Below the pieces are notes generated by a model that had not been told where the DNA came from, did no database searches, and worked only from the letters and a program-made list of their open reading frames with translations. A DNA stretch of 64,000 nucleotides, from the NCBI GenBank assembly GCA_002269645.1, contig NIVC01000818.1, positions 1 through 64,000 of the forward strand. The letters run 5' to 3'. Each line of letters starts with the position of its first letter. Within the stretch, counting starts at the first letter, position 1. The position numbers were made by a program, and so were the translations under genes. The stretch comes from Macrostomum lignano. Its lineage: Eukaryota. Of this stretch, positions 8,500 to 62,699 are shown piece by piece.

Positions 8500-9325
8500 A
8501 TGACCGCTCTGAGACAGCTGCTAGCCACATCGCTGCTGCTAAAGCTGGTGGCGGTGTTCACCTCGGCCGCCGCTCTCGAAGCCAGCACCGTGGCCTCCAC
8601 CAGCTACATCGGCTGCTATGTGGACAACCCGCTCGGAGTCCGCGACCTGGACGGCCTGTCTGGCATGAGCAGCATCGGAGAGTACGCGGTGAACTCTGTC
8701 CAGGCTTTTGTGAAGCGAATGTCCGACCTGACGGTGGCTCTGTGCAGCCACATCTGCTCGCTGGGCAGCTTCCGCTACTTCGCTCTGCAGAACTATCACG
8801 ACTGCAGCTGCGACAACGAGTACGGACTGTACGGCACCGCGGCGGAGTCGCAGTGCAGCTTCCCGTGCACCGGAAACTCCGCTGAGAAATGCGGCGGCGG
8901 GGCCCGGAACTCCGTCTACGAGAATGTCTATGCGACTCCGACAGCAGATCCAACTTCGGATAAGCCGTCTCCTGGTGAGCGCATGAATGCACGCGGACTG
9001 ATTGACTGACTTCCACAGATTTAGTTATATGATACGAGCGTATGGGTATCTATGCGGAAAAGATTTTGCTTCATCCAAATTCCCAGTGTCAGCCGCTGGC
9101 ATCTTCAACAAGATGATTGACCCGCCAGCCTCATCAAACGCCACCCTGGCCAGTCTGAAAACCGCCAACGCCATCGAGTGCGCGGCCGCCTGCCACCGCA
9201 GCCCGGACTGCCTCGCCTGCGCCTTCGTGCAGTCCAGCCGGATGTGCCACCTCATGAGATTCGCCGCTGTGCCCAGCGAGGTCAATAGCGAGGCGAGTTC
9301 AATCTGGACGAAAGTGCACGGCTGA
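8500..9325 (+). CDS. Secreted WSC + PAN/Apple protein, copy 1 (exons 8500-8974, 9093-9325; 235 aa)
   Basis: Hydrophobic signal peptide. WSC motif YIGCYVD..RDL..LTVALCSHIC..RYFALQ..CSC..YG..C..PC.GN..EKCGG..NSVY. Phase-1 intron GTGAGC(8975)..TGTCAG(9092). PAN motif ECAAACHRSPDCLACAFVQSSRMCHL. Confidence 0.9.
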
Positions 9326-9383
9326 GGCAGGACAAGCGATCGTTGGAACAAACCAAGCACTTGACAAATGTAATTGTGGCAAT

Positions 9384-10012
9384 GGCGGGCATCATAAACC
9401 CGAAATATCACAAGTCCAAAAAAGCACTTTCCATTATGAACGAAATATCGCAAACCCGAAATATAACAAACCCGAAATATCGCAAACCCGAAATATCGCA
9501 AACCCGAAGTATTGCAAACCCGAAATATCGCAAACCCGAAATATCACAAACCCGAAATATCACAACTCCAAAAAAGCGCTTTCCATTATGAACGAAATAT
9601 CGCAAACCCGAAATATAACAAACCCGAAATATCGCAAACCCGAAATATAACAAACCCGAAATATCGCAAACCCGAAATATCACAAACCCGAAATATAACA
9701 AACCCGAAATATCGCAAACCCGAAATATAACAAACCCGAAATATCGCAAACCCGAAATATAACAAACCCGAAATATCACAAACCCGAAATATCACAAACC
9801 CGAAATATCGCAAACCCGAAATATAACAAACCCGAAATATCGCAAACCCGAAATATCACAAAGCCGAAATATCACAACTCTAAAAAAGCACTTTCCATTA
9901 TGAACCCAAAATATTATAAATCCGAAAAAATCATAATTCCGAAAGTGCTAGCAACTCTCAATGCTATTTTAGTTTTCGGGTTTGTGATATTTCGGGTTTA
10001 TGATGGCGACCC
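9384..10012. mobile_element. MITE/foldback-like non-autonomous element with an internal 16-nt repeat array
   Basis: CATCATAAACCCGAAATATCACAA (9390-9413) is inverted at about 9982-10005. The interior is tandem (C/A)(G/A)CAAACCCGAAATAT units. Confidence 0.7.
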
Positions 10013-10319
10013 ATATTGTAATGCCACAAGTCTTACACTGCAGAACAATTCGTACTCAAGAGTCAGTGTACTCGGTACAATATAGCTTACCCTATTCTGT
10101 ACGACTCACACAGGTCAATCGCAGTAACCAAATCTAAAGTTTGCAACTAGGGAAAAACGTGAATTGTGAATGAGCAAATTGATGACTGACTTTATTCTTA
10201 TGGGTGGCGTCGGAGAGACAGCGCCGCTCACAGACTTCTTGGCTGCTCCAGTTGCAAGGCTCAAACTTGGCAGACTAGAAATAGATTTAGCGACAGGTTG
10301 AGTTGACAGGACAGATGCA

Positions 10320-12555: not shown

Positions 12556-15500
12556 TCAGCTATAGAGGGTGGACTTAATCAGGCCGCTCGTGAACATAGC
12601 GATGACGGTTGTCATGCTCACGACAATGCCAGTGAGGCTCACGCACAGAGCCGCTCTGCCCAGCAGTCGAGCTCGTCGGAGGCGTCGCCTCTGCTGGTGA
12701 GCTCGCCCAGCCGAGTCCTGCGAGCTGCGGCCGCGCTGCTGCTCTTGAAGGATCAGCTGCTGCTGCATCGCCAGCGCCGTGACCAGCTCCGAGTGCGAGC
12801 GGACTGAGCAGGCCAGGGCAGCCAGGCCGAACGGCAGGTTGATGAACACAGCGGTGAGCACGGACACGATCAGGTAGGTTGTGCGATTCGCATTGCCCGG
12901 CTGCGGCTGGAACTGGCGAGGGTGCCGTTCGCATGGCTCCGCCAGGCCGTGCAGCGAGTGCCGGCTGCCTTGAAGCAGGCCGCTGCCGCCGCCGCCGCTG
13001 TCAATCAGCGTCACCAGCTGGTCGTCGTCTGGTGAAATTCCGGAAGCCGTGGCTGTCACAGAGGCGGGGAGAATTCATTTAGTACTGCTCGACAGACAAT
13101 GGTGGAGCTTCTCAAATACGAGTGTAATATTGAAAGAATTCTTAGAAAATCTAGGGCTCAGGGTCGAAAAAATACCTTAGAGCATGACTGCGGGCCGGAG
13201 GAATGGAGGAGGGGAGAGGAGAAGAGAGGAGAAGAGAGGAGGAGAGAAGAGGAGAGAGGAGAAGAGAGGAGAGAAAAGGAGAGAGGAGAAGAGAGGAGAG
13301 GAGAGGAGAGGAGAGGAGAGGAGAGGAGAGGAGAGGAGGCAGGGGTGTCGGTACCGGGGGGTGGGGGTACGGGGGCTAGAGCCCCCACTTTTTAGCATGA
13401 TCCAGCAAGTGCCCTTTTTGAATTTTAAACAAGTGTCGACTGGTTTTGGGCTCTGGCTTTTCTGAGTCTTGGAAGCTAAGGGGGGTATCAGCTGATATAA
13501 TAGTTCATGTTGTTCTCAATCTCCATTCCACTACAGTTTTTATCGAATGTGCATAAGCCTAGTGCTTTCAGTGCATTGGTTAGCATTTCACCTTAAGGGC
13601 CAGATTGAGAAGCTAGCGTGGCGCAATGACTGCCCTTCTGGGTTTGCTTCGCTGGGCCCCCGTAAGCAAAACGCGCCCAGTAGTCCCTGACTGCAGGCAA
13701 GAGAAGGGAGAGAGGATAGAGCAGAGAATTATATGAGCGTAGGAGAAAGTAGAGGCGAGGAGAGGAGAAGGAAAGGAAGGACAAGATAAGAGGAGAGAGG
13801 AGAGGAGAGGAGAGGAGAGGAGAGGAGAGAGGAGAGGATAGAAGAGAGGATAGAAGAGGAGAGGAGAGGAAAGAGGAGAGGAGAGGAAAGAGGAGAGGAG
13901 AGGAAAGGAGAGAGGAGATGAGAGAGGTGAAGAGAGGAAAGGAGAGAGGAGAGGAGATGAGAGAAGAGTAGAGGAGAGAAAAGAGAAGAGATAGGAGGGA
14001 GAGGAGAGGAGAGGAGAGAAGAGAGAAGAGGAGAGGAGAGGAAAGGAGAGAGGAGATGAGAGGAGAGGAGAGGAGAGGAGAGGAAAGGAGAGAGGAGAGG
14101 AGATGAGAGAGGTGAGGAGAGGAGAGGAAAGGAGAGAGGAGAGGAGATGAGAGAAGAGAGGAGAGTAGAGGAGAGAAAAGAGAAGAGGAGAGGAGAGGAA
14201 AGGAGAGAGGAGAGGAGAGGAGAGAAGAGAGAAGAGGAGAGGAGAGGAAAGGAGAGAGGAGAGGAGAGTAGAGTAGAGAGGAGAAGAGAGGAGAAGGGAG
14301 GAGAGGAGAGGAGAGGATAGTAGAGGAGAGGATAGTAGAGGAGAGGAGAAGAGAGAAGAGAGGAGAGAAGAGAGAGGAGCACTGAGAAGAGAAATAAACA
14401 TTGAGCGGGCCGGGTTGCTATTGTGAAGTTTCAACGGACCGAGGGTCGGAATTTTCCGGCCACTGATAGGCGGATTACGAGAATTTACCCAGTACTCGTA
14501 ATTTGATTTCTATGAGAATTACATGTCAAGCTATGTATATTTCAGGTAAGATTCGAAGAAACCTGTATAAGAAGTTAACCTGACCGTGCATGGCGACCAT
14601 GAGCCGAAATTTTTGCGTCTTATAGTCTGTACTATGCACTCACTGTATGATTCATATTAAAAGTAGACGAAAAAGTTGCCAGTTGTAAGTTGACCCGCGA
14701 GTGGCCAAAAATGTCAGAATTCCGGTTACTAGGTAGAGTTTGTAGATTTAAGTGACCGAAAAAGTTTACCATCAACCGTAGACGCTTTGAGCGCACCGGC
14801 CTCATTGTTAAACTACAAACCGGACTCTTTTCGTTTACTATTCATTTGCTGTGCATTTTAGTTACTTACTGCGAAATGCTTCAATGCGAACCCCTTCAAT
14901 TTTACACCCTTCATGCGTGCAGGCGTCCATTCGCTTTAACAGTCCATGAAGCCAGCAATCGCATGTTTCATGCTTCTATTCAAGCCATTTTACAAGTGGG
15001 AATTCCAACGAATTGTGGAAATGACCACAGCACGGAATGCTGACAAATCCAATTAAAAAATCGTGCATTTGTGTGCTCAAGCTGTCGCTAAGGCCCCATG
15101 CGCTAGTGGGAATGAGAGCGGCAGAGCAGACACTCCGTCGAGTGAATCCTTTGACTGAAGCGTTAAATATGATCGGACTGGTGATTGCATTTGTATTGCC
15201 CATCGACACTCTCAAATCGTGCCAATTTTGTGCCAGGAAAATGGCACAAAATTTTGAGAGAGAAGAAAATTTTAATTTTTATTTGCCCTTAAATTCTCAA
15301 TATCTCACCTTCTGAACTTCCAAATTGCAAAGTAAAAGCATGTAGAAACCTGTGCTTAGACCGAGGTGCATGCAAGTCTACCAAACTATTTTTTATGAAA
15401 TGCTTTAACCGAGACCGGAAAGCAAGCCAAGTTCCTTCTTTTAATTTAGCATCCACAGTATGTTACTCTGTTGTGGCTATTTAATTTACATGTAGCTGTG

Positions 15501-18044: not shown

Positions 18045-19625
18045 CTGCCCACTGAAGGCTTTAGATGGGGGATAGAATGCCCACTGAAGGATTTAGATGG
18101 GGGATAGAATGTCCACTGAAGGCTTTAGATGGGGGATAGAATGCCCACTGAAGGCTTTAGATGGGGGATAGAATGCCCACTGAAGGATTTAGATGGGGGA
18201 TAGAATGCCCACTGAAGGATTCAGATGGGGGATAGAATGCCCACTGAAGGATTCAGATGGGGGATAGAATGCCCACTGAAGGATTTAGATGGGGGATAGA
18301 ATTCCCAATGAAGGATTTGGAGGGGGGATAGAATGCCCACTGAAGGATTCAGATGGGGGATAGAATGCCCACTGAAGGATTCAGATGGGGGATAGAATGC
18401 CCACTGAAGGATTTAGATGGGGGATAGAATGCCCACTGAAGGATTTAGATGGGGGATAGAATGCCCACTGAAGGATTTAGATGGGGGATAGAATTCCCAC
18501 TGAAGGATTCAGATGGGGGATAGAATTCCCACTGAAGGATTTAGATGGGGGATAGAATTCCCAATGAAGGATTTGGAGGGGGGATAGAATGCCCACTGAA
18601 GGATTCAGATGGGGGATAGAATGCCCACTGAAGGCTTTAGATGGGGGATAGAATGCCCACTGAAGGCTTTAGATGGGGGATAGAATGCCCACTGAAGGAT
18701 TTAGATGGGGGATAGAATGCCCACTGAAGGATTCAGATGGGGGATAGAATGCCCACTGAAGGATTCAGATGGGGGATAGAATGCCCACTGAAGGATTTAG
18801 ATGGGGGATAGAATTCCCAATGAAGGATTTGGAGGGGGGATAGAATGCCCACTGAAGGATTCAGATGGGGGGTAGAATGCCCACTGAAGGATTCAGATGG
18901 GGGATAGAATGCCCACTGAAGGATTTAGATGGGGGATAGAATGCCCACTGAAGGATTTAGATGGGGGATAGAATGCCCACTGAAGGATTTAGATGGGGGA
19001 TAGAATTCCCACTGAAGGATTCAGATGGGGGATAGAATTCCCACTGAAGGATTCAGATGGGGGATAGAATTCCCAATGAAGGATTTGGAGGGGGGATAGA
19101 ATGCCCACTGAAGGATTCAGATGGGGGATAGAATGCCCACTGAAGGATTTAGATGGGGGATAGAATGCCCACTGAAGGATTTAGATGGGGGATAGAATGC
19201 CCACTGAAGGATTTAGATGGGGGATAGAATTCCCACTGAAGGATTCAGATGGGGGATAGAATTCCCACTGAAGGATTCAGATGGGGGATAGAATTCCCAA
19301 TGAAGGATTTGGAGGGGGGATAGAATTCCCACTGAAGGATTCAGATGGGGGATAGAATTCCCACTGAAGGATTCAGATGGGGGATAGAATTCCTAATGAA
19401 GGATTTAGATGGGGGATAGAATGCCCACTGAAGGCTTTAGATGGGGGATAGAATGCCCAATGAAGGATTTAGATGGGGGATAGAATGCCCAATGAAGGAT
19501 TTAGATGAGGGATAGAATTCCCACTGAAGGATCTAGATGGGGGATATAATGGCCACTGAAGGCTCTAGCAGGGGGATAGAATGTCCACTGAAGGATCTAA
19601 ACGGGAGATAGGATGGCCGCTGAAG
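18045..19625. repeat. 32-nt satellite CCCACTGAAGGATTTAGATGGGGGATAGAATG with 256-nt higher-order periodicity
   Basis: About 49 copies. The variant CCCAATG..TTGGAGGGGGG recurs at 18304, 18560, 18816, 19072 and 19296. Confidence 0.95.
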
Positions 19626-19667
19626 GACCCAAATTAGCACTGAGCCGAAGCAAGAACTCCAACCTGA

Positions 19668-22600
19668 TCAGCTGCACTCAGAGGCTGCCCCGCCATCGGG
19701 AATCTGGTGCAGATATCCGTAGCCCAGTCCGCAGCCCAGAGCGCCGTCGCCGCCCCAGTTGGGGTCGGGCCTGACGGTTAGCAGGCGGAACTGCTCAGTG
19801 CTGCTGCAGTAGACGTGCAGCTGCAGCGCGGACTGGGCAGCTGCGTGAGATTCGATCAGCTCGAACAGGTCCTCGTGCGTGTGCAGCGGAGCGGAGCCTG
19901 TTCTGCAGTCGGCGGCATCGCAGTCCACGACAGCGGCCCCGCCAACAATGAAGTCGCTGTCGGGGCGCAGGCCGGCCACACTGGCCGGGGAGCCTGGCGC
20001 CACGTCCAGCACGCGCCAGGCCAAGGCCGGTTGGCCGGCGCTGCAGCACAGACGCACGCTGACGCCAAGGAGGCCATGGCCGCCCCACTGGCCGCTGCCA
20101 GGCTCCGAGCCAGAGGCCAGGTCAATGTGAACCTGGCGGACCGTGCGCTGCTTACTGCTGTACACGGTGAGGTCAACTGAGGACAGAGCTTGAGCAGTCG
20201 GCCTCAGCAATGAGTGCAGCTGCCGTTCCGGTGTCTGCAGGTGAAGATATTTTGCTAGCTAAGAGAAGTTCAATTTTGCACGAAGGATCTATTATGGAAA
20301 ACCACTCATTTTGGTACCGAAGCCAAGCATCCATTTAGGCGCCACAGACAGGCACTTATTTTGGCGCTGAAGGCAAGCATCCATTTAGGCGCCACAGACA
20401 GGCACTTATTTTGGCGCTGAAGGCAAGCATCCATTTAGGCGCCACAGACAGGCACTCATTTTGGCGCAAAGCCAAGCATCCATTTTGGCGCGGCAGACAT
20501 AGGCACTTATTTTGGCGCTGAAGGCAAGCATCCATTTAGGCGCGGCAGACATAGGCACTTATTTTGGCGCTGAAGGCAAGCATCCATTTAGGCGCGGCAG
20601 ACATAGGCACTTATTTTGGCGCTGAAGGCAAGCATCCATTTAGGCGCGGCAGACATAGGCACTTATTTTGGCGCTGAAGGCAAGCATCCATTTAGGCGCG
20701 GCAGACATAGGCACTTATTTTGGTGCTGAAGGCAAGCATCCATTTTGGCGCCGCAGACAGGCAGTTATTTTGGCGCCGAGGGCAAGCATCAATTTTGGCG
20801 CCGCACAGGCACTTATTTTGGCACCGAAGGCAAGCATCCATTTTGGCGCCGCACAGGCACTTATTTTGGCGCCGAAGGCAAGCATCCATTTTGGCGCCGC
20901 ACAGGCACTTAATTTGGCGCTGAAGGCAAGCATCCATTTAGGCGCCACAGACAGGCAGTTATTTTGGCACCGAAGGCAAGCATCAATTTTGGCGCCGCAC
21001 AGGCACTTATTTTGGCACCGAAGGCAAGCATCCATTTTGGCGCCACAGACAGGCAGTTATTTTGGCACCGAAGGCAAGCATCAATTTTGGCGCCGCACAG
21101 GCACTTATTTTGGCACCGAAGGCAAGCATCCATTTTGGCGCCGCAGACAGGCAGTTATTTTGGCGCCGAGGGCAAGCATCAATTTTGGCGCCGCACAGGC
21201 ACTTATTTTGGCGCCGAGGGCAAGCATCAATTTTGGCGCCGCACAGGCACTTATTTTGGCACCGAAGGCAAGCATCCATTTAGGCGCCACAAACAGGCAC
21301 TCATTTTGGCGCAAAGCCAAGCATCCATTTTGGCGCCGCAGACATAGGCACTTATTTTGGCGCCGAAGGCAAGCATCCATTTTGGCGCGGCAGACATAGG
21401 CACTTATTTTGGTGCTGAAGGCAAGCATCCATTTTGGCGCCGCACAGGCACTTATTTTGGCACCGAAGGCAAGCATCCATTTTGGCGCCGCACAGGCACT
21501 TATTTTGGCGCCGAAGGCAAGCATTTATTTTGGCACCGCAGACGCCAAAGGTCTACAAATTTAAAGGTCAATAAAAGCAAGAACACAAAGCTCCTTACCA
21601 CATGCTGCCCATTAATAGCTAGTATAAAGTCAAAATATGGCTGAAGACCAGCTTGCTTTGCAGGAGAGTTGTGCTGCACCTACAGTATTAAGAATTAATA
21701 ATAAATTTAAGCTAACTATGATAAAAATAGGCAGTGTTTAATTCATTGATCGTTTCTTTTCATTATACTCATAAAAGTCCTTAGTCTAAAGCCTAAAGGT
21801 AAATCTTAAATTATAAAACAGGTCTATCAAAAAATTATACAAAATGCCAATAGGCCTTTAACTAAACTTCAAACATTCAAAATTACTTTTTTTGAAAAAT
21901 CTAACCTGATACTACTTTGAATATTTTGTGTGAATCATAATAACAGAGCATTTCATATCACAAATGCATATAAAACTGCAAGTTTTAATCAGCCATTTTA
22001 ATTTTTACTCTCCTTGATCTATTGATTGTACTTTGTCTGCTGCTACTGTAGTCAGGTTTGCAACTTAAAAACAAAATAAATTAAAGTCCTAATGATATGA
22101 TATAATGATATTAGTAGACTTGGTTACATAAAAAATAATCAATGAGCATTATTTTGATTTGTAATGGAAGAAAAGGTAATTGACACTCAAACTCCTACTA
22201 GATCAACTATACCTTCAACTTAACCAATAACAAGTGGAGCTAGAGTTGGGCCACAGACAAGCTCCTTGAATGCAAAAGCAAGGCGGCAATACTGATAAGC
22301 TTCTATTGCCTTATTCTGATAAAGGTCTGATACTAGTCTCCAAGGAGGCTGCAATTGATATAGACATTTATGCTAGCAATCATGATGGCATTGCTAGTAA
22401 TTGATTCAGGCTTGGTATAGGTGTGCGGCTCTTTTTCTGCCAATATTGTTAGCTCTGTGTTTGTTCTGTGTGATGGTTTAATAATTTTATTTATTTTCAT
22501 CTCTTAGTGTATAATTATCAACCAGACTGAACCCATTTATTTATTGCCTTATACAGTTTTCAATTTTCTTTATTTATTTAAATATACAGAATTTTGAATC

Positions 22601-25600
22601 ATGAGTGCAAGCCCTGAAAATGACTGCTTGTGTTGAAATGCATTGGCTATAACAATAATTTACTTATATTTTGATTTTGGCTTTCATTTCTCTATTATTT
22701 ATTAAACGAGCATCTCTATTAGATTTTGACCATATATTGCATATCCATAGGTTTTTTAAACTTATTTCAATAGGGAACCTTACAAATTAGTATTTAATTA
22801 ATAGAGCCATACTAGCAATCTATGCCCCCCGTTAGGGAGCCAAAGAAATGCAATACACGTTTTTTTAATAAGCTACATGTATCCTTGAAATCTTAAAAAA
22901 TCTTTTGTCAAACCTTGTAAGCCTTGACATGTCAGTAATTCCCCCCACAAGCTTTAACATATCAACTTCCCCCCCCTGACATCTCAGCAATGCCCCCAAT
23001 AAGCCTTGAAAATCTAAAAATATCTGTCAACCTTCTAACCCTAATCCTAACCTAACCCTAACCCTAACCCTAGCCTAACCCTAACCCTAACCCTAACCCT
23101 AACCTAACCCTAAAGCATTGAAATTTCAGTAATTCTCTCTAAGAGTCATTATAGCACTACTACAGCATTATAGCGATTCCCTGCAAGCCTCGACATTGTA
23201 GGGATTCCCAAATGAATCTCTTAACTTCGACATGAAGCTTCTTTTATTTTTTACATTACGCTTTTTTATCAGCGATCCCTTCCCTGAGGAGGCATCAAAT
23301 AATGTAATATAAAGTTTTCAATAAACTACATGTAGCTTCTGGCTTTAGCCTTGAAATCTCATTTATACCCCAGTGAGCCTTGACATCTCAGCTACTCCCC
23401 CCGTAAGCCTTGACATGTCAGCGATGGCCCCCATAAACCTTGAAATCTAAAAAATCCCCTGTTAACCTTGAAACCCGATAAAATATAACCCTCAACCCAC
23501 ACCTGACCTAAACCTAACTTTAACCCAACCTAAAGCCTCGAAACCTCAGCAATTCTTCTCCCCTAAGCCTTGACATTTTAGTGATTCCTTCTTTAAGAAT
23601 CACAGCACTATAACGATTTCCACCAAGCTTTGACATCCTAGCAATTCCCAAATGAATCTTTTAACTTCGACATGACTTTTCTTTTATGTATACATAGTGC
23701 TACTTTTATTTTTTACATGACTCTTCTTCTATCAGGGCCTCCCCCCGTGGCGAGCCAACAAAAAATGCAATAAAAAAATAGAGTAAAGTACATGAACTTT
23801 GAAGTAGCTTCTGACTTTTGCTTTGACATCTCAGAAACGCCCCCATAATCTCAGTTATTCTCTGTGAGCCTTGACGTCTCAGTTTTTCTCCCCAGCACAG
23901 CATTATAGCTGCATTTAATTTTTACATGACACCTTCATGTCTGACATGACGCTTCTTTTATTCTACCATGATGCTTCTTAATTTTTTAAATGACACTTTC
24001 ATTAGTCTTTAAATGAGGCTTCTATGATTTTTCATGACGCTTCTATGATTTTTACATGATGCTTCTATGATTTTTTATATGACGCTTCTATGATTGTTTA
24101 TATGACGCTTCTATGCTTTTTACATGACGCTTCTATGATTTTTTTACATGACGCTTCCATGATTGTTTACATGACGCTTCTATGATTTTTACATGACGCT
24201 TCTATGATTGTTTACATGATGCTTCTATGATTGTCTACATGACGCTTCTATGCTTTTTCCATGACGCTTCTATGATTGTTTACATGACGCTTCTATGCTT
24301 TTTAGATGACGCTTCTATGAGTATGATTGTTTATATGACGCTACTATGATTTTTACATGACGCTTCTATGATTTTTACATGACGCTTCTATGATTGTTTA
24401 CATGACGCTTCTATGATTTTTTACATGACGCTTCTATGGTTTTTTTATGACGCTTCTATGATGGTTTACATGACGCTTCTATGATTTTTTACATGACGTT
24501 TCTATGATTGTTTACATGACGCTTCTATGATTTTTTTAAATGACGCTTCTATAATTGTTTACATGACGCTTCTGTGATTTTTTCATGACACTCCTATGAT
24601 TTTTTCATGACGCTTCTATGATTGTTTACATGACGCTTCTATGATTTTTTTAAATGACCCTTTTATGATTTTTAACATGACGCTTCTATGATTGTTTACA
24701 TGACACTTCTATGATAGTTTACATGACTCTTCAATGATTTTTTACATGACGCTTCTATGGTTTTTTTATGACGCTTCTATGATTTTTTTTAAATGACGCT
24801 TCTATGAGTTTTATATGACGCTTCTATGCTTTTTACATGACGCTTCTATGATTGTTTACATGACGCTTCTATGATTTTTTTACATGACGCTTCTATGATT
24901 TTTTTAAATGACGCTTCTATGAGTTTTACATGACGCTTCTATGATTTTTTACATGACGCTTCTATGATTTTTTTAAATGACGCTTCTATGATTGTTTACA
25001 TGACGCTTCTATGCTTTTTACATGACGCTTCTATGATGGTTTACATGACGCTTCTATGATGGTTTACATGACGCTTCTATGATTGTTTACATGACGCTTC
25101 TATGATTGTTTACATGACACTTCTATGATTGTTTACATGACGCTTCTATGATTTTTTACATGACGCTTCTATGATTTTTTACATGACGCTTATATGATTT
25201 TTACATGACGCTTCTATGATTGTTTACATGACGCTTCTATGATTTTTTACATGACACTTCTATGATTTTTACATGACGCTTCTATGATTTTTTACATGAC
25301 GCTTCTATGATTTTTTTAAATGACGCTTCTATAATTGTTTACATGACGCTTCTATGATTTTTAGATGACGCTTCGATGATTGTTTACATGACGCTTCTAT
25401 GGTTTTTTCATGACGATTCTATGATTTTTTACATGACGCTTCTATGCTTTATACATGAGGCTTCTATGATTTTTACATGACGCTTCTATGATTGTTTACA
25501 TGACGCTTCTATGATTTTTTACATGACGCTTCTATGATTGTTTACATGACGCTTCTATGATTTTTAACATGACGCTTCTATGATTTTTTACATGACGCTT

Positions 25601-31500: not shown

Positions 31501-32309
31501 ACATTTCAAGTTCTTACATGTCATCGCAACACTATCACCATAAACCTGGTTTCTATCCGTGACTCTGTAACTCAGGTGTCCATGGGGTGTGTCCATTAGC
31601 TTTTTACTACTGCTAACTAGTTTTAAATAGTAATTAATAAAACAGGTTTTTCCCCGGTTTTACAGTAGCATATTGTTGCATCCTTGGAAGATTTTGGCAG
31701 TCTGAGAATTGAGTAGCGCTCAGGGGGTCAGCGGAATGGGTCTGACTGATGCCTCCTCGCTGGCTGCCGGCTGACTGTCGCCCTGATTTACAGCTCCCAG
31801 CACATCCGCAGGGCCACAACATCATGGTGTCGGACGCGGGTGTTGTCAAACTGATCGACTTCGGCTGCTCCCGCCGGCTGCACCAACACCTTGGCGGCGG
31901 CAGCGGGGGCGGTGATCAACCCCCGGCTCTGGCAGCCGCCGCCTCGTTGGACGCGGCCTCGCTGAACGGCACGCCCTACTGGATGGCCCCGGAGCTCGTG
32001 CTTGCGTTCGGCGGCGGCGCTGCAACCGCGGCTGCCAGAGACGGCGACGGTCAGCAGCTGAAGTCGGACTGCTGGTCCATCGGCTGCACGCTGCTCGAGA
32101 TGGCCACCACGCTGCCGCCCTACTCGGACATGCCGCCCCTGGCCGCCGTGTTCGCCATCGGGCGCGGCTCGCCGGAGCCTCCGGCTTTGCCTCAGGGCTT
32201 CTCAGAACCGGCGGCCGAGTTCTACGCGAACTGCCTGCGGCGCGAGCCGGCGAGCCGCCCCACTGCCCAGGAGCTGCTGCGACACGAATTCCTGCTGGCG
32301 TCGCCTTGA
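28501..32309 (+). CDS. MAP3K19: Ankyrin-repeat MAP3K19/YSK4-like Ser/Thr kinase (exons 28501-28562, 28636-29104, 30011-30363, 30629-31319, 31812-32309; about 690 aa; may extend 5')
   Basis: Ankyrin motifs GHSPLIKAALHGN, GHTALHLSAMRGD and GKSPLDLA. Kinase motifs WRQGPLLGRGSYG, IAVK, HGDIK|GHN, KLIDFGC, GTPYWMAPE and KSDCWSIGCT. All four introns are GT-AG with matching phases (2,0,2,0), and the total of 2073 nt is divisible by 3. The frame stays open back to the acceptor at 28460. Orthology is assigned from motif recall. Confidence 0.85.
29270..29555 (-). mobile_element. Short Helitron-like repeat, family B; other copies at 40005-40283 and 56574-56810
   Basis: Shared body GCACTTTAAGCGACA..CAACCGGCGAGAGGCATT..TACGTACGCAGTC. 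Copies at 29270 and 56574 end in CTAA|T on the minus strand (CTRR). Confidence 0.65.
29560..29630 (-). mobile_element. Degenerate tRNA-derived SINE head, same family as 45246-45318
   Basis: GACTGCACTTGGAATCGAGCCTGAGCCGCTGGCACATCAGAGC matches the copy at 45246. Confidence 0.7.
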
Positions 32310-36361: not shown

Positions 36362-36466
36362 ACACATCTGTCTGAGAGGTATCTTGGCTTGCCTGCAAAT
36401 CTAGTCAAAGGGTGTCCAGCAGCCTTCAGCCATCATCCAGCTTACTGTAACCGCCGGTGCGCCAGC

Positions 36467-40283: not shown

Positions 40284-40592
40284 AATAATTTTTTTATTGC
40301 CCCCCTTTAAGTGGAGCGGAGTGAGTTTTCTTATCAGTTGGCTCTGGCGCAATCAATTAAAATTGGCAGTGAAGTTTCTGGCTGATAAAATTTGCATTGA
40401 AAAAGGCCATTTAAAACAGTTTTTCGAATATTTAATCCCTTTAGTATTGAAGCAGATACAAGAAATTTTAACTGTCTTCTTTCCAGACAATTTTGAATCT
40501 TTTGGCGAAAACGCGATCAAAATCGGTGAAGAATTGCAATCTGTAGAGCGTTATGGACATACAAATATTAGAGATTTAGTATATTTAGAAGA

Positions 40593-45243: not shown

Positions 45244-45245
45244 TT

Positions 45246-45764: not shown

Positions 45765-46600
<836 letters not shown>

Positions 46601-47743: not shown

Positions 47744-47820
47744 GTCTGCGGAGAACTTGAAATTACCAGACTGATTCAGACTCAGCTCTCCGTTCATCAT
47801 CGCAACCCGTCGCTGAGCCA

Positions 47821-48592
47821 ATGTTCCGCCCCGATCAGGCCCTCCTGCTGCTGCTGGTGCAGGGCTATTGTTGCTCAGGGCTTCTGCTGCCTCCGCAGCC
47901 GCTGGGCCATCAGTACCTTGGCTGCTACGTTGACGGAGGCAACGGGGACCGGGACCTGGTCGGCCTGAAAGGGGTCACTACTTTGGGGCCCTACTCATAT
48001 GACTCAGGAAACCCAGTCTTTGTCCGAGAAGAAAGTCTGACGCTGGAGATGTGCAGAGAAATCTGCTCCTACGGCCGCTTTCGCTACTTCGGTACCCAGA
48101 GCCGCGTTTTCTGCTGCTGCAGCTCGACCTACGGCTCGAAAGGCGTCGCCGCTGCCGCCGACTGCATCTACCCTTGCACAGGGAACACGTCTCAGGAGTG
48201 CGGCGGCGACTCAAGAAACTCCATCTATGAGTCTCTGTATCCACCGAGTGTGTTCTGCGCCAAGAACATTGTGATCCTCTCAATAAGTTAAACCAGTTTT
48301 TATCACAACGATTTAGACAACGTTTTAAACTCCTTCCTAATTTACAGTTGAACCGAAACTAATGAAAGTTCCCGTTGCTTCCATGCCGAGCATCGCAGCC
48401 TCCACCAGCTCCATCGTTTACCGCAGCGAGACGGCCGGAAGCGTCATCGAGTGTGCGGCCGCCTGCCACCGAAGCCCGGACTGCCTCGCCTGCGCCTTCG
48501 TGCAGTCCAGCCGGATGTGCCGCCTCATGAGATTCGCCGCTGTGCCCAGCGACATCGCCAGCGAGGCCCAGTGGGTCTGGGTGAAGCCGTGA
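47821..48592 (+). CDS. Secreted WSC + PAN/Apple protein, copy 3 (exons 47821-48247, 48348-48592; 223 aa)
   Basis: Signal peptide MFRPDQALLLLLVQGYCCSG. WSC YLGCYVD..RDL..LTLEMCREIC..CGGDSRNSIY. 100-nt phase-1 intron GTGTGT(48248)..TTACAG(48347). PAN core present. Confidence 0.88.
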
Positions 48593-50010: not shown

Positions 50011-51115
50011 CAATTTTGCTTGAATTGCAAGTGAGCCGAATGTCTATCCGCCACCCCTTTCTAATAGGAAGACGGTGAACTGAGGGAAGTTCTAATCGTT
50101 TCTCGAATGTAGTTAAAAATCTAGAAAACATATATGTACGCATATGAAATATACTTTTGTGGCCGCTAACCCAGTCGATGCAGCAAATTAAGCAGAGCTC
50201 GCGCTGGTTAGTACGCAGCTGAATCGGCTGCGCAGAGAGATTTCTGAGAGAATGATGTGCTTACAATACAAAGACTGCGACACAGCTGCAGACGAAAGAA
50301 AATTACGGCATTGCGAAACTAAAAACTACCGTTTGGCTCCTATTGTTACTTCTTTTTTCATAAATCCCCAATACATGCAATCCCCACAAAGGGAATAAGC
50401 TGTGGCGAGATTCTGTTTGTAGAAAAATTTAATGGACTTCTGGATACCTGATGGACCATATTCTATAGTTAGCCACTAGCTAGCAATAACATCACCTGAG
50501 CGAGTCTCCTTTATGAGATGTGCGGCACCTGAGCAAAGCCATGCCTCTGAGCTGAGCAGTTTAAGCAGAGTTTTGAGTCGCTAATGAGAGACATTTCCAA
50601 GAATTCTGAGACACGCAAAGTTAGGAGCCAGCAGCACATTCATCTTCCATCAGAACTAACAAAGACTATAACTGCATTTCGTGCAACGCATTGCATACTG
50701 TCTTCTGCTGGCTCAGTAACATTCTCAACGAGATGGTACTTGCAGGCTAATTATTCCACAGCGGGTCAGCTAGGGGTAAGAGACGGGACTGATTTAGACA
50801 AAGAATTTTATACAATGGACAGCTATGCAAAAGAGATGCAGCTGGGGCCATTGTCGACTCAGTCACGGTAGGAAAGACAGTCGAGCTACTGCTGCTTGGC
50901 TGGTGTGGAGTTTGAAGCGTTGCTGCCCTGCTGTGCATCTCCAAGTTTATTAGAGTCTCTCCGGGTTGAGCAGCCAATTGTGTCAGCAGCAAGTAAATTA
51001 AGCATCCTCTGTTTTGTGACAACCCTCGCCTAGCAACAGAACTGAGTAGAAAACCCCCATCGCAACTCCGCAACGGCTTCGTCAGATCTGCTCTTAAGTG
51101 CATTTGAGCTGTGAA

Positions 51116-51983
51116 ATGCATGCGGCTGCTTTCTCGCTGCTGCTGTTGCTCGTCAGCGGTGGCGGCTGCACCGTCGCAGTTCCTCCACAGCCGCTGGGGT
51201 TCAGCCACGTTGGCTGCTATGCGAATGGCGGCGGCGGCAACAAAGACTTGGCCGGACTTCTCGGACTCGTCTCGCTTGGAATGTTTGCCAACCATGAGAA
51301 CGTCCCTGCATTCGTGCGCACTGACAGCTCGATGACCCTGGAGCTGTGCAGCCAGATCTGCTCCTACGGCCGGTTTCGCTACTTCTGCGTTCAGGGCAGG
51401 CACTTCTGTGGCTGCGACAACACGTTTGGCTCCCACGGTGCCGCTGCTCCGTCGGACTGCAGCGTGTCCTGCGGAGGAAATGCGAGTCAGATTTGCGGTG
51501 GCTGGGGCTACAGCTCCATCTACGAAATCTCCTATGCTCCCGGTACGACGGTTGCTTTGAATAAGAAGAAACTATTTGCTAATAGTTATTTAACTTTAAC
51601 GGATTGAATACAAGTACTATCTAACTTGCTATTGTGTTCGATGAAGATGTAACTTCTCATGCATTCAGATTAAAAGCTTAGCATTGGTCACCAGAATGCA
51701 TGACAGCAGAAAGTCACTCAGCAACTTCTTTCACTCAACTTCACCCGCAGTCGGGTCCGTGTTGGAGCGAGTGGCCGCGTCTGCCATGCCGACCATCTCA
51801 GCCTCCGCCAGCTCCGTCATCTACTGGAGCCAGGAGGCCACGGTGGCCTTCGAGTGCCTCGCCGCCTGCCACCGCAGCCCGGACTGCCTCGCCTGCGCCT
51901 TCGTGCAGTCCAGCCGGATGTGCCGCCTCATGAAATTCGCCGCAGTGCCCAGCGAGGTCGCCAGCGAGGCCCAGTGGGTCTGA
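51116..51983 (+). CDS. Secreted WSC + PAN/Apple protein, copy 4 (exons 51116-51542, 51751-51983; 219 aa; TGG>TGA four codons before the family stop)
   Basis: Signal peptide MHAAAFSLLLLLVSGGGC, WSC domain, 208-nt phase-1 intron GTACGA..CCGCAG. TGA at 51981 is followed by the ancestral GTG AAG CCG TGA (51993-51995). Confidence 0.88.
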
Positions 51984-52637
51984 GTGAAGCCGTGAGCCTG
52001 TCGGCTGATAATCTGCCGTGGAGAAACAAACAGCTCTGAACCCAAAGCTCATTTTGTCTGCTTAAGGAAATGTTTGAACAATTGGTTGAAGCAGCAGGTG
52101 GCCACAAAATATTGGCAGATTGAATTTGCAGTGCTGCCACAATACCAAGATCACAACACAACAGACGATAAGTGAATTATGGCATCGCAAAACTCGAAGC
52201 AAAACTCGGCTGCCTACTGTTAATTATTTCTTCATATATCCGTTACAGACATGGAGTTACACTAGGCAGTTAGCTGTACATATTGATCCAACTGATCTCA
52301 AATCCAAGTATCCAACAGGAAATGCACCGATCAGGGAAATGAGAGTTTTATTAGCAGAATCAGCGACTTGATCATGCAGCCTCTGGACTCAAAGCCCAAC
52401 GTTATAGAAAACGCTGCTTGTTTCACAAATTCCGTTAATTTTTTGGGGACAGTTTACTGTAAATGCTTCTTTATGAAACCCTTGTCTAAGTTAATGAGTT
52501 ATCAACCTGACATTGGCGCATTAAATCTTAAGAAATCGACTACACTACTATTTAGTAGCGAGATATGAATAGCAAATACACTGTTGAAAATGCATCGAAA
52601 ATTTAAAGCCAACTGTGCTTCTGCTCCTGCCTCCTGG

Positions 52638-52905: not shown

Positions 52906-54696
52906 AGTTGCTAGTCTCTCGCCTCTTCTAGTCAGTAGCTATTCATCCCTGGGATTCCAGATTTTAACCAAATTGAGCTGCCCTCAGCTTCCATTGTGCT
53001 TGGGGGCTTCGGTGCAGGCATGTTCGAATGGTCTTATCATCAGGTTTATTATGCCGCACAGTAAAGTCGTTTGACGTGACCTGAAACGGGTTATTTTGGC
53101 ATTTTTGGCTGTTCTCCATGTCCACAATGCAATGCAAGCAGCACCCACAATGTAATGCAAGCAGCACCCACAATGCAATGCAAGCAGCACCTACAATGCA
53201 AGCCCGCCATCAAACCTGAGCGAGTCGCTTTTAAAAAACAAGCATCATCCATGGACTACTGAAACTAGTTTCGAGGTGATGCTACTAAAACTTGTTTTAG
53301 TAGTCCCTGGCATCACCTGAGCGAGGCAATGCCAAGGAGAGCTCTGAGCTGAACAGCTTAAACAGAGTTTTGAGCTCTGCCCTCCCTGCCCGGTCCATCT
53401 TGCTCTGACCTTGGTCCATCTGCTGGCTCCTCTGGCTGTCTCCCTGCCCTTGTGTCTCGGCTCTCATCCTGACAGTGGACTGGAGATGGGAGAGTTGCAT
53501 TACTTGTCACGCATTGCTGTCTTCTGCTTGCTCTTGTTGAAAATTTTCAACAAGCTGGTGCTTGCATGCTAATCCTCCCACAGCGATTCAGCGAGAGGTA
53601 AGAGACGAGACTGATGCAGACAAAGAATTCTATACAATAGATAGCTATGCGAAAGAGATGCCGCTGGTGCCTGAGTCGACTCAGTCACGGTGGGAAAGAC
53701 AGTCGGCCTGGAGGGGTAGGCTGGATCGATGGATCTTCAGCAGCAGTTCTGCAGCAGTCTGGTGTTACGAATCAGTGCCAGCGCTGTCAATGCTTCCGCT
53801 GCTGTGGAGTTTGAGGCTGACGTGTTGTGCATGCATCTATCAGTGTCTCCGGGTTGAGCAGCTTTGCTTAGCTGTCTCAGCTTTGCTGCAATGCTTTAAT
53901 CCTCACCTGGCAGCAGAGTGGAACAAAACTCGGTACTCTTACCACTGCTTCTTGACTCGGCTTCCGTTGCCTCGGTCATTCGGCTCGTTACCGATTGACT
54001 CCCGATTCGGGCACCTGGGGTTTGGAAATTGCATCCTTCCATTTGCAACGATAAGATAGTTTAGTGACTTGGTGCTATTCCACTTTCCATTGCTACTGCT
54101 TTGTTTTTGTTTGCATTTTCAGTTTTCTTTCCTTGAATTCGCGCCTGTCGGCATCCTACGTCAGATAGACTGACTATTTATGCTGTGCAATGGGGCGTGT
54201 TTCACGTGACCATCGGGTTGAATTGGCTGTGTTCAGGTAAGTGGATTTCCACGCTAGCACAAGTTTCTTGTGAAAGGCGCGAATTCGAATATACTCCGGC
54301 TTTCGCTTGCCGCTTTCCATGTCAATCAAGCGATACAATGCGAGCTTCCTTTCTGCCTCTCTGCCGCTTGGTCAAGATGGACAAGGGAAGCGAGGTTGGT
54401 TGTCTTGCTGGTTACCATGGCAACTTGTCTGAACTGCTTACCAGCCTGCGCAGGAGAGTTACAGAGTCACCAAGCCCCGCAAGTCGCAAGCAACCAATGA
54501 AATTTCATCAACTCATGCCATTGTTTCTTGTGAAAAAGTCCGCATATAATACACATCCGCCTGAAAGGCATTTTGGCCTGTCCGTAATCTTGTCAAAGGG
54601 TGTCCAGCAGTGAATCCTCATCCTGTAGTCAGAGTCCAGCAGCGTCAAGCAGCCTTCAGTCTCCATCCAGATTGCTGTTACCGCCAGTGCGCCAGC

Positions 54697-55447
54697 ATGC
54701 AGCGCTCCGTGCACCTGACTGCCCTCCTATCCGTGCCTCTGGCTCTGCTGTTCCTGGTGGCGATGAGTCAGCCAAGTGTGCTGCATCACGGATACATCGG
54801 CTGCTTTGTTGACAGCAACAGCAATAGAGATTTGAAAGGCCTGACTGGGTTGAAGACAATTGGGCCTTTCACCGATAAGATAAACTTGGCCTACTTTTAC
54901 AATAAATACACCGTCACCATCGAGAGCTGCAGCAGCCTCTGCGCCCTGGGCAGATTTCGCTACTTCGGTCTGCAGGCGGGAGGCTTCTGCTTCTGCGGCA
55001 ACAGCTACGGACTGCATGGAGCCGCTTCATCAGATTCTGAGTGTAACAAAAACTGCTATGGAAATAGCAGCCAGATTTGCGGCGGCTTCGGTAGAAACTC
55101 GGTGAGAACTTCTATGCGCCCGGTAAGAAAAGTTTGCTGTTCCTTTAGCTAAAAATTCCTGCATCTACATTTTTCTGCATTTGTGCTGCTGCTCGGAGAC
55201 CGGCCTCTTCAAGCGCGTGGCCTCAACCAAGTCGATGCTCACCACCGCGCCCGGACAGCCAGAGAACAGCACCTACTGGAGCCAGGAGGCCACGGTGGCC
55301 TTCGAGTGCCTCGCCGCCTGCCGCCACAGCCCGGACTGCCTCGCCTGCGCCTTCATGCAGTCCAGCCGGATGTGCCGCCTCCTGAGATTCGCCGCTGTGC
55401 CCGGCGAGATCGCCAGCGAGGCCCAGTGGGTCTGGGTGAAGCCGTGA
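54697..55447 (+). CDS. WSC + PAN/Apple copy 5: frameshifted but potentially rescued (exons 54697-55122, 55199-55447; 224 aa), otherwise a pseudogene
   Basis: Net 4-nt deletion at about 55101 (CATTTA>GG) relative to copies 2 and 6. The family acceptor CTCAG has become CTCGG, leaving the next AG (55197-55198) 2 nt downstream. The net loss of 6 nt keeps the frame. Confidence 0.7.
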
Positions 55448-56573
55448 GCCTATATGTGGACTGATAGTCTACCGTGGATAAACAAACATTGAACAGTTAC
55501 CAGCGCAGAACACGAACCTACTAAAGCTTGTTTGTTTAAATGAACGAGAATTTGAAAAAAATGATAATTGAAGCAGCAGGAAGACCGGAACATTTGCGGT
55601 CACACTTTGAAATCATAACGCAAAACAACAAAATAATATAATAAACTCGATTATTTAGCTTTTATCGCATTGCAAAAATGTCTAATATTTTTTTTCTTCA
55701 TCCACTAAAGTCTAAGTAGATATTAATCATTGATAACTTATCCTTGACCTTGATCAACCAAGTTGGTGCTGAAAATTCTGAAAAGTTCTGAGCGGTAGAA
55801 AAACACAGTGCGGGTTTTGCCAGCACAGATCTCGGATGCGCCATGGAATCGCGGAGTCTGCGAACTGACATCATCTGTTGATTGACAACCATGTGTTTTA
55901 TCGACCTTGGCTCCCCATCAATTTTCCAACCAGCATTCATTGCCATTGCCAAGGTGAGCAGGTGCTCATCATGTGATTGTATCCCTGGGTGAACCCCTCG
56001 TTATCTAAGCAGGCATCAGCCAGTTGTTGAACTCGAAATCGCGTCTGTCAGCGGAGATGCATGACCTTAAGAAGAGTTATCAAGAGTACTAAAGCAGAAA
56101 AAGCAGCATAAGGCATAGGGAAAGTCTGACAGTCTTGTAACTTTCTGTGGCCTCTGGCACAACGCTAAGTCAGTCTTAGGAGTCTTGGTGGTAGCAGTGG
56201 TCCTAAGGACATGAAATCAAGAAATAGAAACCATTTTTCATAATGGGCACCACTCCAGTGGATCCACTTTGTTCTTTTTCTAGTGCAATGAATATATTTT
56301 ACAAACTGATTGTCTACTTTCAGTAGCAAAATAAGCGGCAGATGGGTAGAAAATTTTACTATTGCAATTTTTGTACTTGCTTTATACTTATTTCACATAA
56401 GCAGAAGTCTCTTGCCCCAAATGCCAAAGTGTATAGAGGAACAGATTCTGCTGTAGTTGCACACAGCTTCTGTACAGAATGCAAACTGGCAACTTGACTC
56501 TTGTTTGAGTAAGCCGTTCACCCATTGGTATTTATATTGTGAGAGTATTCTGCTTTTGTAATCTTTGTATTAA

Positions 56574-56810: not shown

Positions 56811-56839
56811 TTTCTTGATTAATTTTTTATTTGTCAATA

Positions 56840-60010: not shown

Positions 60011-60916
60011 TACAATGCAGCTCTGTGAAAAGCCCGCCATCATCACCTGAGCGAGTCTCCTTTATGAGACGCGTGGCACCTGCTCTCCAGGCAATGCCAG
60101 GAGAGCTCTGAGCTGAACAGTTTGAGCTTTGAGTCGCTGATGAGAGGCAATTTCAAGAATTCTGAGACACGCAGAGTTAGGAGCCTGTGGCAGCTTCATC
60201 TTCCATGAGAGCTATGTTCCCAAAGATGGGAAAGCCGCATGACTTGCATCTTCTGCTTGCTCATTAAAATTCTCAACAAGCTGTGCTTGCAGGCTAAGCA
60301 TCCTACAACGATTCAGCTGGGGGGGGATTAGAGACGGAACGGATGCATCGATCGATATTCGCTTTCAGTTCAACAGCAGTCTTGTGCCACGCACCAGTGC
60401 CAGCGCTTTCAATGCTTCTGCTGCTTGGCTGATGTGGAGTTTGAAGCGTTGCTTTTCTGCTGTGCATGGCAGGCTTTCCCGCCTGAGCAGCTCTGCTTAT
60501 CTGTCTCAGCTTTGTCTTAATCCTTGGCAGCAGAATGGAACAAAACTTCTTGCTCTTGCCCCGCTGTACTCCTTGACTCGGCTTTTGTGGCCTCGGTCGT
60601 TTCCGCTTGACTCCCGATTCGTACCCTGGGGTTTGGAAATTGCATCGTTATTTTGCAACGATAATACATCAAAGACCACCAGGAACACTTTGTAGTCTAG
60701 AAGTATTTGCAACATATTTTTAGTTTGGGAAGCAGGAGTACATTTAGCTAGTTTTAGTGGCTCTGTGCTATCTAACTTTCTCGGCGCTACTGCTTTGTTT
60801 TTTGCTACATTTTCACTTGTTTTCTTTTACCCGATATCGTGTCTGTCGGCATTCTGACTACATGTATGTATACTATGTACTGTGCATGTTTCATGTGACC
60901 ATCAGGTTGAATTGGA

Positions 60917-61332
60917 TGTTTCAGATAGGTTCAGGTAGGTTCAGATAGGTTCAGGTAGGTTCAGTTAGGTTCAGGTAGGTTAAGTTAGGTTCAGGTAGGT
61001 TCAGATAGGTTCACGTAGGTTCAGATAGGTTCACGTAGGTTAAGTTAGGTTCAGGTAGGTTCAGATAGGTTCAGGTAGGTTAAGTTAGGTTCAGGTAGGT
61101 TCAGATAGGTTCACGTAGGTTCAGGTAGGTAGGTTCAGGTAGGTTCAAGTAGGTTCAGGTAGGTTCAGGTAGGTAGGTTCAGGTAGGTAGGTTCAGGTAG
61201 GTAGGTTCAGGTAGGTAGGTTCAGGTAGGTAGGTTCAGGTAGGTTCAAGTAGGTTCAGGTAGGTTCAGATAGGTTCAGATAGGTTCAGATAGGTTCAGAT
61301 AGGTTCAGTTAGGTTCAGATAGGTTCAGTTAG
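60917..61332. repeat. 10-nt repeat AGGTTCAGGT / AGGTTCAGAT
   Basis: About 40 copies. A single GTTCAGGTA sits at the paralogous site 54231. Confidence 0.95.
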
Positions 61333-61945
61333 GTAGTTTTGCCGTCGAGATTTACGAGCGTTGCAATTTAGCATGCTATAGCATCTAAAGCATTGCCTGG
61401 GCCGGCTCTGAGCCACGGTGAGTAACGGACTATCGCTCGAGAAATCACAAGACAAATCGCAAAGCTGTGCAAGGCAAAGGAAGATTGTTACAGCTACATG
61501 TACTAGCTAATAACAAACAGATAGTCCAGCAATTTTTATCAATGGATATTAAGGACTTTCTGTGACGATTCAGAAACCGAAGATACCGACAGCGGCTTTC
61601 GCTTGTAGCTTGCAGTGTCAATCAAGCGAGACAATGCGAGCTTCCTTTTATAATTGTTGTCTCTCTGCCGCTCCGTCAAGATGGACAACGGCAAGTTGAG
61701 CTGGTTTTGGTTTGCTGGTGACGAAGCCAGCCTGCCTCAGAAGAATTATTTTCACCAAGTCCCGCAAGTCGCTGCAACCAATGAAATTTCATCTGCGTCG
61801 CATTCATGCACGCCATTGTTTCTTGTGGCAAATCGTGCATATACATGTAGGCCACATTTGCTTCAGAGGTATCCCAGCTTGACTGTAATCTTGTCAAAGG
61901 GTGTCCTGCAGCCTTCAGTCTGGCTGTAACCGCCGGTGCGCCAGC

Positions 61946-62699
61946 ATGCAGCACTCCGTGCACCTGATTGTCCTCCTATCCGTGCCTCTGGCTCTGCTGT
62001 TCCTGGTGGCGATGAGTCAGCCAAGTGTGCTGCATCACGGATACATCGGCTGCTTTGTTGACAGCAGCAGCAATAGAGATTTGAAAGGCCTGACTGGGTT
62101 GAAGACTATTGGACCTTTCACCGATAAGATAGAGTTCGCCTACTTTTTCAATGGATACACCGTCACCATCGAGAGCTGCAGCAGCCTCTGCGCCCTGGGC
62201 AGATTTCGCTACTTCGGTCTGCAGGCGGAAGCCTTCTGCTTCTGCGACAACAGTTACGGACTGCACGGAGCCGCTTCATCAGATTCTGAGTGTAACAAAG
62301 ACTGCGTTGGAAACAGCAGCCAGATTTGCGGCGGCTTCGATAGGAGCTCCATTTATGAGAACTTCTATGCGCCCGGTAAGAAAAGTTTCCTGGTCATTTA
62401 GCTGACGATTCCTGCATCTGCATTTTCTCAATTTGTGCTGCTGCTCAGAGACCGGCCTCTTCAAGCGCGTGGCCTCAACCAAGTCGATGCTCACCACCGC
62501 GGCCGGACAGACAGAGAACAGCACCTACTGGAGCCAGGAGGCCACGGTGACCTTCGAGTGCCTCGCCGCCTGCCACCGCAGCCCGGACTGCCTCGCCTGC
62601 GCCTTCGTGCAGTCCAGCCGGATGTGCCGGCTCCTGAGATTCGCCGCTGTGCCCAGCGAGGTCGCCAGCGAGGCCCAGTGGGTCTGGGTGAAGCCGTGA
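61946..62699 (+). CDS. Secreted WSC + PAN/Apple protein, copy 6 (exons 61946-62375, 62449-62699; 226 aa)
   Basis: Intact signal peptide, 8-Cys WSC, 73-nt phase-1 intron GTAAGA..GCTCAG, PAN core, AATAAA at 62729. Confidence 0.92.

Follow-up and report, generated by a model that had tools for sequence, protein, structure and literature searches.

Gene conversion limited to a single domain is a textbook phenomenon. In MHC class I genes, the 3′ exons are homogenised within a species or cluster and the peptide-binding exons keep old lineages. A similar partition of one gene into a constant and a variable part is found in the locus described here, a 54-kb cluster of six paralogues (c1 to c6) in the flatworm Macrostomum lignano. 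The cluster lies within the first 64,000 nucleotides (nt) of contig NIVC01000818.1 (assembly GCA_002269645.1); this whole stretch of DNA is referred to as the window. All six copies are on the + strand, consist of two exons and are of a secreted WSC-PAN type: exon 1 encodes a signal peptide and a WSC domain (the head), and exon 2 encodes a PAN-like domain, with 80-83 residues. A block of 108 nt in exon 2, the PAN core, is nearly identical in the six copies. Our preferred explanation, to which we assign a probability of about 0.8, is that short interlocus (non-allelic) gene conversions have homogenised 110-220 bp of exon 2 among ancient linked paralogues. Unlike in MHC class I, nothing points to the WSC head being under balancing or diversifying selection; the ratio of nonsynonymous to synonymous divergence (dN/dS) is ~0.5-0.6 for the young copies of the cluster. 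A preliminary description of this DNA had portrayed the PAN domain as staying uniform while the head diverges. The head is indeed old and has escaped conversion, but nothing shows that it is being actively diversified.

The closest counterpart is the neurophysin exon of the vasopressin/vasotocin and oxytocin/isotocin genes, for which partial gene conversion is described in several lineages (PMC4432659, citing Ruppert et al. 1984 and Levy et al. 1987). As in the window, the paralogues are linked, and the central conserved cysteine-rich domain alone has been homogenised to identical nucleotides, the functionally distinct parts having diverged. The GC content at third codon positions (GC3) and tree discordance serve as evidence in that study, as they do here (PMC4432659). 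The neurophysin system comprises two genes and its tract is a separate exon, whereas the window contains six tandem copies with tracts that lie inside one exon and differ in their ends. For human duplicates, a genome-wide modelling study gives a mean tract length of 250 bp for non-allelic conversion, a GC bias, and a rate that falls with divergence until the copies 'escape' (Harpak et al., bioRxiv 10.1101/135152). The window is alike in having homology-limited short tracts (110-215 bp), and differs in that it concerns one flatworm cluster, of which all but a sub-exonic island has escaped. The window is an ordinary, clean example of a known process, and no new mechanism needs to be invoked. What is specific is the setting, namely a family apparently restricted to M. 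lignano and sub-exonic islands in otherwise saturated copies. The locus provides a quantified case of sub-exonic concerted evolution in flatworms, a group in which interlocus gene conversion has hardly been described. It also carries a practical warning: the 3′ exon of this family misleads gene trees, duplication dating and orthologue calls, and head and tail should be treated separately. This matters for work on the repeat-rich, partly polyploid M. lignano genome.

A blastn search of the window located the 108-nt block in exactly six places, always on the + strand and always inside the second exon of its gene, starting at 9176, 37080, 48449, 51852, 55304 and 62556. The cores of c1 (9176-9283) and c2 (37080-37187) differ at 2 of 108 nt, and dinucleotide shuffles give an expectation of 0.00 matches. 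Identity to the c1 block is 98.1% at 37080, 94.4% at both 51852 and 62556, and 90.7% at 55304. Over all pairs, the cores differ by 2-11 nt, with c5 being the most diverged (8-11 differences). The preliminary description had given the same count for c1 and c2 and had called the block nearly identical in copies 3-6, both of which stand. It had also noted an abrupt drop in identity outside the block, and this is borne out by the numbers: c1 and c2 match at 106 of 108 positions in the core versus 45 of 108 in the preceding exon 2 linker and 194 of 330 in the WSC region (Fisher p 5e-22 and 4e-18, respectively). Across pairs, the comparison of core and linker gives p values of 1e-16 to 5e-22. The divergent strings quoted there as lying downstream of the block are found at 9284-9301 (c1) and 37188-37205 (c2). 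The longest exact matches between copies measure 49-80 nt in exon 2 versus 10-17 nt in exon 1; for c1 and c2, the values are 64 nt, within the homogenised tract, and 13 nt.

The six copies represent four lineages: c1, c3, c4 and a young trio, c2/c5/c6. Exon 1 of c1, c3 and c4 is 54-58% identical to that of all other copies, and in these deep pairs the introns and the 300-bp flanks are just 37-57% identical in forced global alignments. The neutral DNA of the deep pairs is thus saturated, and the copies are old. Six young duplicates with hyper-diverging heads were considered and rejected, as the deep pairs can be aligned no better in their introns and flanks than in their heads. Within the trio, exon 1 is 93-94% identical and the introns are 82-88% identical, and c2 is a whole-gene duplicate of c5/c6 that includes ~290 bp of promoter (36180-37228). 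Recent whole-gene duplication is the reason why the trio is alike over its full length. The earlier statement that the WSC exons barely align as DNA is correct when c1, c3 or c4 is compared with any other copy, but fails within the trio. The homology between c2 and c5/c6 stops ~5 nt past the stop codon (37224-37228), and an 85-nt inverted match (94%) joins the regions downstream of c2 and c6 (39223-39307 and 63257-63173).

The synonymous divergence (dS) was calculated by the Nei-Gojobori method on a protein-guided codon alignment. For the deep pairs, dS is 0.95-2.15 in the WSC region and 0.04-0.19 in the core, which is 5-50 times lower. Such a difference might arise in the absence of any exchange, if strong purifying selection on the PAN core were combined with extreme codon bias (GC3 ~0.94). 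Even among distant paralogues, the protein sequence of the core varies little, and GC3 is higher in the core (0.89-0.94) than in the WSC region (0.66-0.85). As a control for bias, we determined how often identical amino acids are encoded by the same codon, leaving out Met and Trp. The fraction is 54-69% in the WSC region and 90-100% in the core (one-sided Fisher p 1e-5 to 2e-2). Because of the higher GC3 of the core, a second control was needed, which was provided by p7, a paralogue (P0007) located outside the cluster on contig NIVC01000038.1 (locus L001; core GC3, 0.83). p7 retains 24-27 of the 36 core residues and shares exact runs of 15-18 nt with the window copies, as selection and bias would allow. 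However, only 70-77% of the retained residues share the codon and the core dS is 0.52-0.73, compared with 90-100% and 0.04-0.19 within the window. For p7, neither dS nor the same-codon fraction (53-70% in the WSC region versus 70-77% in the core) differs significantly between the two regions. Thus, protein constraint and codon bias contribute to the similarity, but they do not suffice to make the window copies nearly identical. Selection and bias also leave unexplained why c3 and c4 have c2/5/6-type core residues when their linkers point to the p7/P0008 type, and why identity continues 37 bp into the 3′ untranslated region (UTR) of c4. We consider it very unlikely that they account for the core without exchange.

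Runs of identity were assessed with our own implementation of a GENECONV-like test, in which the order of 426 polymorphic sites was permuted 5000 times. Every deep pair within the window that does not involve c5 has a significant maximal run (p 0.0002-0.03), always located in the linker end, the core or the tail. The runs of c3-c5 and c4-c5 are also significant, but that of c1-c5 is not (p 0.40), and no p7 pair was significant in this test after Bonferroni correction. Trees built from different parts of the gene are discordant. In the linker tree, c3 groups with p7 and P0008-10 (76%). In the tree of core and tail, p7 and P0008-10 form a clade of their own (97%), apart from all window copies and from the M. 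lignano paralogue P0006, and c3 and c4 sit with c2/c5/c6/P0006. The preliminary description had proposed a dS comparison, separate head and tail trees and a GENECONV-type analysis as checks on its claim that gene conversion keeps the domain uniform. Comparable dS in core and WSC exon after correction for codon bias, named there as grounds for refutation, was not observed: the core dS is far below the WSC dS, and the gap survives the codon-bias control; together with the tree discordance, the significant run lengths and the intra-exonic tract ends described below, this supports the claim. A further run of identity is found in exon 1, where c2 and c6 are 100% identical over codons 60-95 (36647-36754 versus 62123-62230), with 78-89% identity in the adjoining windows (run test p 0.02). 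Exchange among similar copies probably acts in exon 1 also, and would then not be limited to one domain.

The homogenised tracts, all on the + strand, differ in extent between copies. In c1, the tract spans 9173-9283 (~110 nt; self-blast extends it to 9169/9174-9294, or ~110-125 bp) and is the sole part of the gene that can be aligned as DNA to the other copies by self-blast. It is flanked by a linker with 42% identity and by a downstream tail that is homologous, yet only 58-61% identical. In c3, the tract begins in the last codons of the linker and ends at the stop codon (48443-48592, 150 nt; 95.3% identity to 37074-37223 by self-blast), and the 3′UTR is unrelated to those of the other copies. 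Upstream of the tract, the c3 linker is p7-like (63% nucleotide identity to p7 versus 39-41% to c2/c5/c6). The c4 tract is c5/c6-like and the longest at ~215 nt (51818-52032), extending from the linker codons TAC-TGG through the stop codon and 37 bp into the 3′UTR; self-blast matches it to 55270-55488 (91.3%) and 62522-62740 (92.7%). On its 5′ side, the c4 linker is c3/p7-like. The linkers of c3 and c4 upstream of their tracts resemble those of p7 and P0008-P0011 ('SMP.I.A..SS..Y'; 81-85% nucleotide identity in that segment). Contrary to first impressions, homogenisation is therefore not strictly limited to the PAN core: such a limit describes c1, but the c3 tract reaches the stop codon, and the c4 tract starts in the last part of the linker and continues for 37 bp beyond the stop codon.

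All tract ends are intra-exonic, differ between copies and do not coincide with an intron or exon border. Exon shuffling via the intron was rejected on these grounds. The tracts have the sharp ends and the typical length (tens to hundreds of bp) of conversion tracts, and those of c1 and c3 are flanked by old, diverged homologous sequence. The three different extents indicate separate, patch-like events, and at least three such events with different end points (in c1, c3 and c4) are needed. Exchange has probably also occurred at the 5′ edge of the c2 core, which reads GCC-GCC as in c1 and c3, as opposed to CTC-GCC in c5 and c6. An alternative would be one-off chimeras, in which unequal crossing-over or exon-level reuse of a cassette joined a constant 3′ module to different heads. 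Tandem, co-oriented copies favour unequal exchange, and c4 is c5/c6-like from the middle of the linker to beyond the stop codon and has a non-coding element upstream in common with c5 and c6. For c4, unequal crossing-over or cassette reuse is possible. For the cluster as a whole, chimeras of this kind are quite unlikely, given the three tract extents, the lack of a tract end at the intron/exon border, and the internal position of the c1 tract, which has old homologous sequence on both sides. Even in c4, the homology to c5/c6 continues for only 37 bp beyond the stop codon; c5 and c6 themselves are colinear for >600 bp. The reuse of one constant cassette, which the preliminary description had offered alongside gene conversion, is at odds with the differing tract ends within exon 2 and the old homologous flanks of the c1 and c3 tracts.

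Could the near-identity be an artefact of assembly or polishing, with multi-mapping reads homogenising a short GC-rich repeat? Assemblies of M. lignano contain many repeats, its genome is partly polyploid, and 32 rows of tandem repeats were found in the 64 kb of the window. Against an artefact, the six cores are 2-11 nt apart and carry private variants (e.g. 9184 G, 9249 A, 48454 T and 55322-55326 GCCAC), the tracts end cleanly, and the reading frames have been maintained. Public M. lignano protein models show the same mosaics of head and tail, such as P0006, which combines another head with the same tail. In addition, exon 1 of the P0004 model must contain an indel that the window lacks, so that the model derives from a different sequence. 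We regard an artefact as highly improbable. Even less probable is that a nucleotide-level functional element overlaps the core, for instance an RNA structure, a small-RNA target or an antisense feature. It would account for the conservation of silent sites, and the core of the c5 pseudogene is the most changed. However, core and tail show no excess folding (z = +1.05), no Rfam match was found in the window, the silent sites are not conserved in p7, and the conserved span varies among copies.

We return to interlocus gene conversion and how it may have operated. The cores of the deep pairs have diverged by 2-8%, which does not exceed the 12-18% seen in the introns of the youngest duplicates, a measure of their neutral divergence; the events are thus recent or continuing. 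In each event, local c2/c5/c6-type sequence would have overwritten the central, disulphide-rich part of the PAN-like domain, silent sites included, presumably when a double-strand break in one copy was repaired from a neighbouring copy. The strong constraint on the protein may leave the core as the only place with enough uninterrupted identity for homologous pairing. Each conversion would renew this identity, making the process self-sustaining in the core, while the WSC exon, intron and flanks escaped. GC-biased repair may have added to the very high GC3 of the tracts, for which selection on codon usage is an alternative. Physical proximity appears to matter, because p7, on another contig, has not been homogenised.

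Several observations weigh against this explanation. The core of the c5 pseudogene is the most diverged, contrary to what indiscriminate ongoing conversion would predict; several of its variants recur in other M. lignano paralogues ('RH' in P0002 and 'VPGEV' in P0001). The key signal comes from 36 codons (~24 silent sites), and the pairs are not independent. Given the higher GC3 of the core, codon bias by itself should produce a certain surplus of shared codons, and only one gene, p7, serves as control. In the head tree, the position of c3 and c4 near P0008-10 and p7 has <60% bootstrap support. Finally, the upstream element common to c4 and c5/c6 allows that the head, and not the tail, of c4 was replaced. 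This non-coding element of ~450 bp (50490-50940) is 73-91% identical to 53343-53863 (upstream of c5) and 60041-60470 (upstream of c6), whereas the proximal promoter, exon 1 and intron of c4 cannot be aligned with those of c5/c6. Either c4 is a c5/6-type unit with a swapped head, or the upstream element is a local repeat.

A broader possibility is that the homogenised patch is more than fallout from homology-limited repair, PAN flavours being kept uniform per cluster throughout the genome (the window, P0008-11 and P0015/P0017 types). Selection could achieve this, for example through co-assembly of subunits via the PAN domain, of which exon 2 encodes five cysteines; alternatively, recombination-prone sequence at the 3′ end of the genes could drive homogenisation, such as that from which the minisatellite behind p7 (~18 copies; see below) arose. 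The variable WSC heads would then supply binding diversity. We consider this reading unlikely.

The domain assignments are as follows. The WSC domain (PF01822) is recognised in the window copies with E values of 1.4e-9 to 7e-14 (38-52 bits versus a cut-off of 27.8), and the mature exon 1 product contains eight cysteines, as in the eight-cysteine WSC module. A profile search of the PDB with the family matched the WSC domain of KREMEN1 (E 2.4e-13) and returned no PAN match. PAN_1 (PF00024) scores 25.0 bits for c1, 21.7 for c2, 22.3 for c3 and 21.3 for c4, with a curated cut-off of 21.4. The AlphaFold (AF2) model, obtained from an alignment of 7 sequences, is poor, with a predicted local distance difference test (pLDDT) score of 39.8 overall and ~70 in the C-terminal region. 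The C-terminal 55 residues are modelled as strand-helix-strand-strand, and their top Foldseek matches are all PAN/apple domains, none with E <= 0.001. Among comparators for this part are the HGF N domain, plasminogen and the apicomplexan PAN/apple lectins; WSC and PAN/apple domains are modules that bind carbohydrate or protein. The 36-codon core corresponds to the central cysteine-rich part of the PAN-like domain (C-x3-C-x5-C-x2-C-AF-x6-C-x-L). It contains elements that are invariant even in distant paralogues (C, DC, C.F, SSRMC.L, FAAVP and EVASE), and is the most constrained part of these proteins. The five cysteines encoded by exon 2 of all copies (e.g. 36973-37223) are an odd number, beside an eight-cysteine WSC domain, and may leave a free or intermolecular cysteine.

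The c2 product is 82-91% identical to M. lignano UniRef entries annotated as 'WSC domain-containing protein', and its exon 2 peptide is identical to that of A0A1I8H460 (P0004). Unlike the modules of KREMEN1, HGF and plasminogen, the full-length architecture of ~210 residues (signal peptide-WSC-PAN) was found in M. lignano only in a hidden Markov model search of 1.84 billion representatives; the remaining matches were multi-WSC proteins of fungi, Diplonema, oyster and others. On the evidence of these searches, the family appears to be an expansion, restricted to M. lignano, of small secreted proteins of the WSC-PAN type. No second head of the c1 type emerged when proteins were searched with c1. 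The head of P0006 is just 50% identical, yet its tail is of the window type, and the tails of the p7/P0008-P0011 group are of another type (…CQGCAFVPSSRMCRLLRFAAVPAEVASEAEWVWMKL). Directly after p7, the last 28 nt of its coding sequence (…EWVWMKL*) are repeated head-to-tail 17.8 times (10721-11219 of L001, NIVC01000038.1), a minisatellite derived from the 3′-terminal part of the PAN exon. Outside the window, a further tandem WSC-PAN cluster, with a PAN flavour of its own (…QCAAFCARTASCSSYRFNSSSGLCRLSSFATAF…), is evident from the fused M. lignano gene models P0015, P0017 and P0092. In a protein alignment judged by eye, the PAN part of these models seems more conserved than the WSC heads. At the protein level, this hints that cluster-specific PAN homogenisation may be general in the family. 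As to function, a possible lead is an M. lignano transcript that is specific to the prostate and carries two WSC domains (PMC4490696); literature searches on Macrostomum and WSC domains or gene conversion yielded nothing specific besides this transcript.

All six introns are in phase 1, 73-208 nt long and bounded by GT-AG, except for a GG acceptor in c5. The spliced open reading frame (ORF) of c1 (8500-8974 and 9087-9325; intron, 112 nt) is intact and encodes 237 residues (Pfam WSC E 3.9e-13; PAN_1 as above). c2 (36467-36899 and 36973-37223; 227 residues), c3 (47821-48247 and 48348-48592; 223 residues, with Pfam WSC and PAN_1 matches) and c6 (61946-62375 and 62449-62699; core 62556-62663; 226 residues) are also intact. 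c4 (51116-51542 and 51751-51995; intron, 208 nt) has a premature in-frame stop codon, TGG to TGA at 51981-51983, three codons ahead of the usual stop of the family, by which the terminal VKP is lost. c5 (54697-55122 and 55197-55447; core 55304-55411) is a pseudogene: 4 nt are deleted near 55101, which shifts the frame of exon 1, and the splice acceptor has changed from AG to GG at 55195-55196.

Unrelated genes separate c1 from c2-c6: a CD225-like ORF (12556-13059, - strand), an ORF with a GRASP55/65 PDZ-like domain (19668-20210, - strand; E 8e-38), and an ORF with ankyrin repeats, behind which lie two ORFs with protein kinase domains (28604-32309, + strand). The window is very dense in minisatellites, the 32 tandem-repeat rows mentioned above being those scoring >=200 in Tandem Repeats Finder (e.g. 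18046-19627, 23944-25849 and 41733-43305). One 23-mer array is present twice, within a duplicated segment of 2.8 kb (22811-25575 and 40592-43305, 88% identity).

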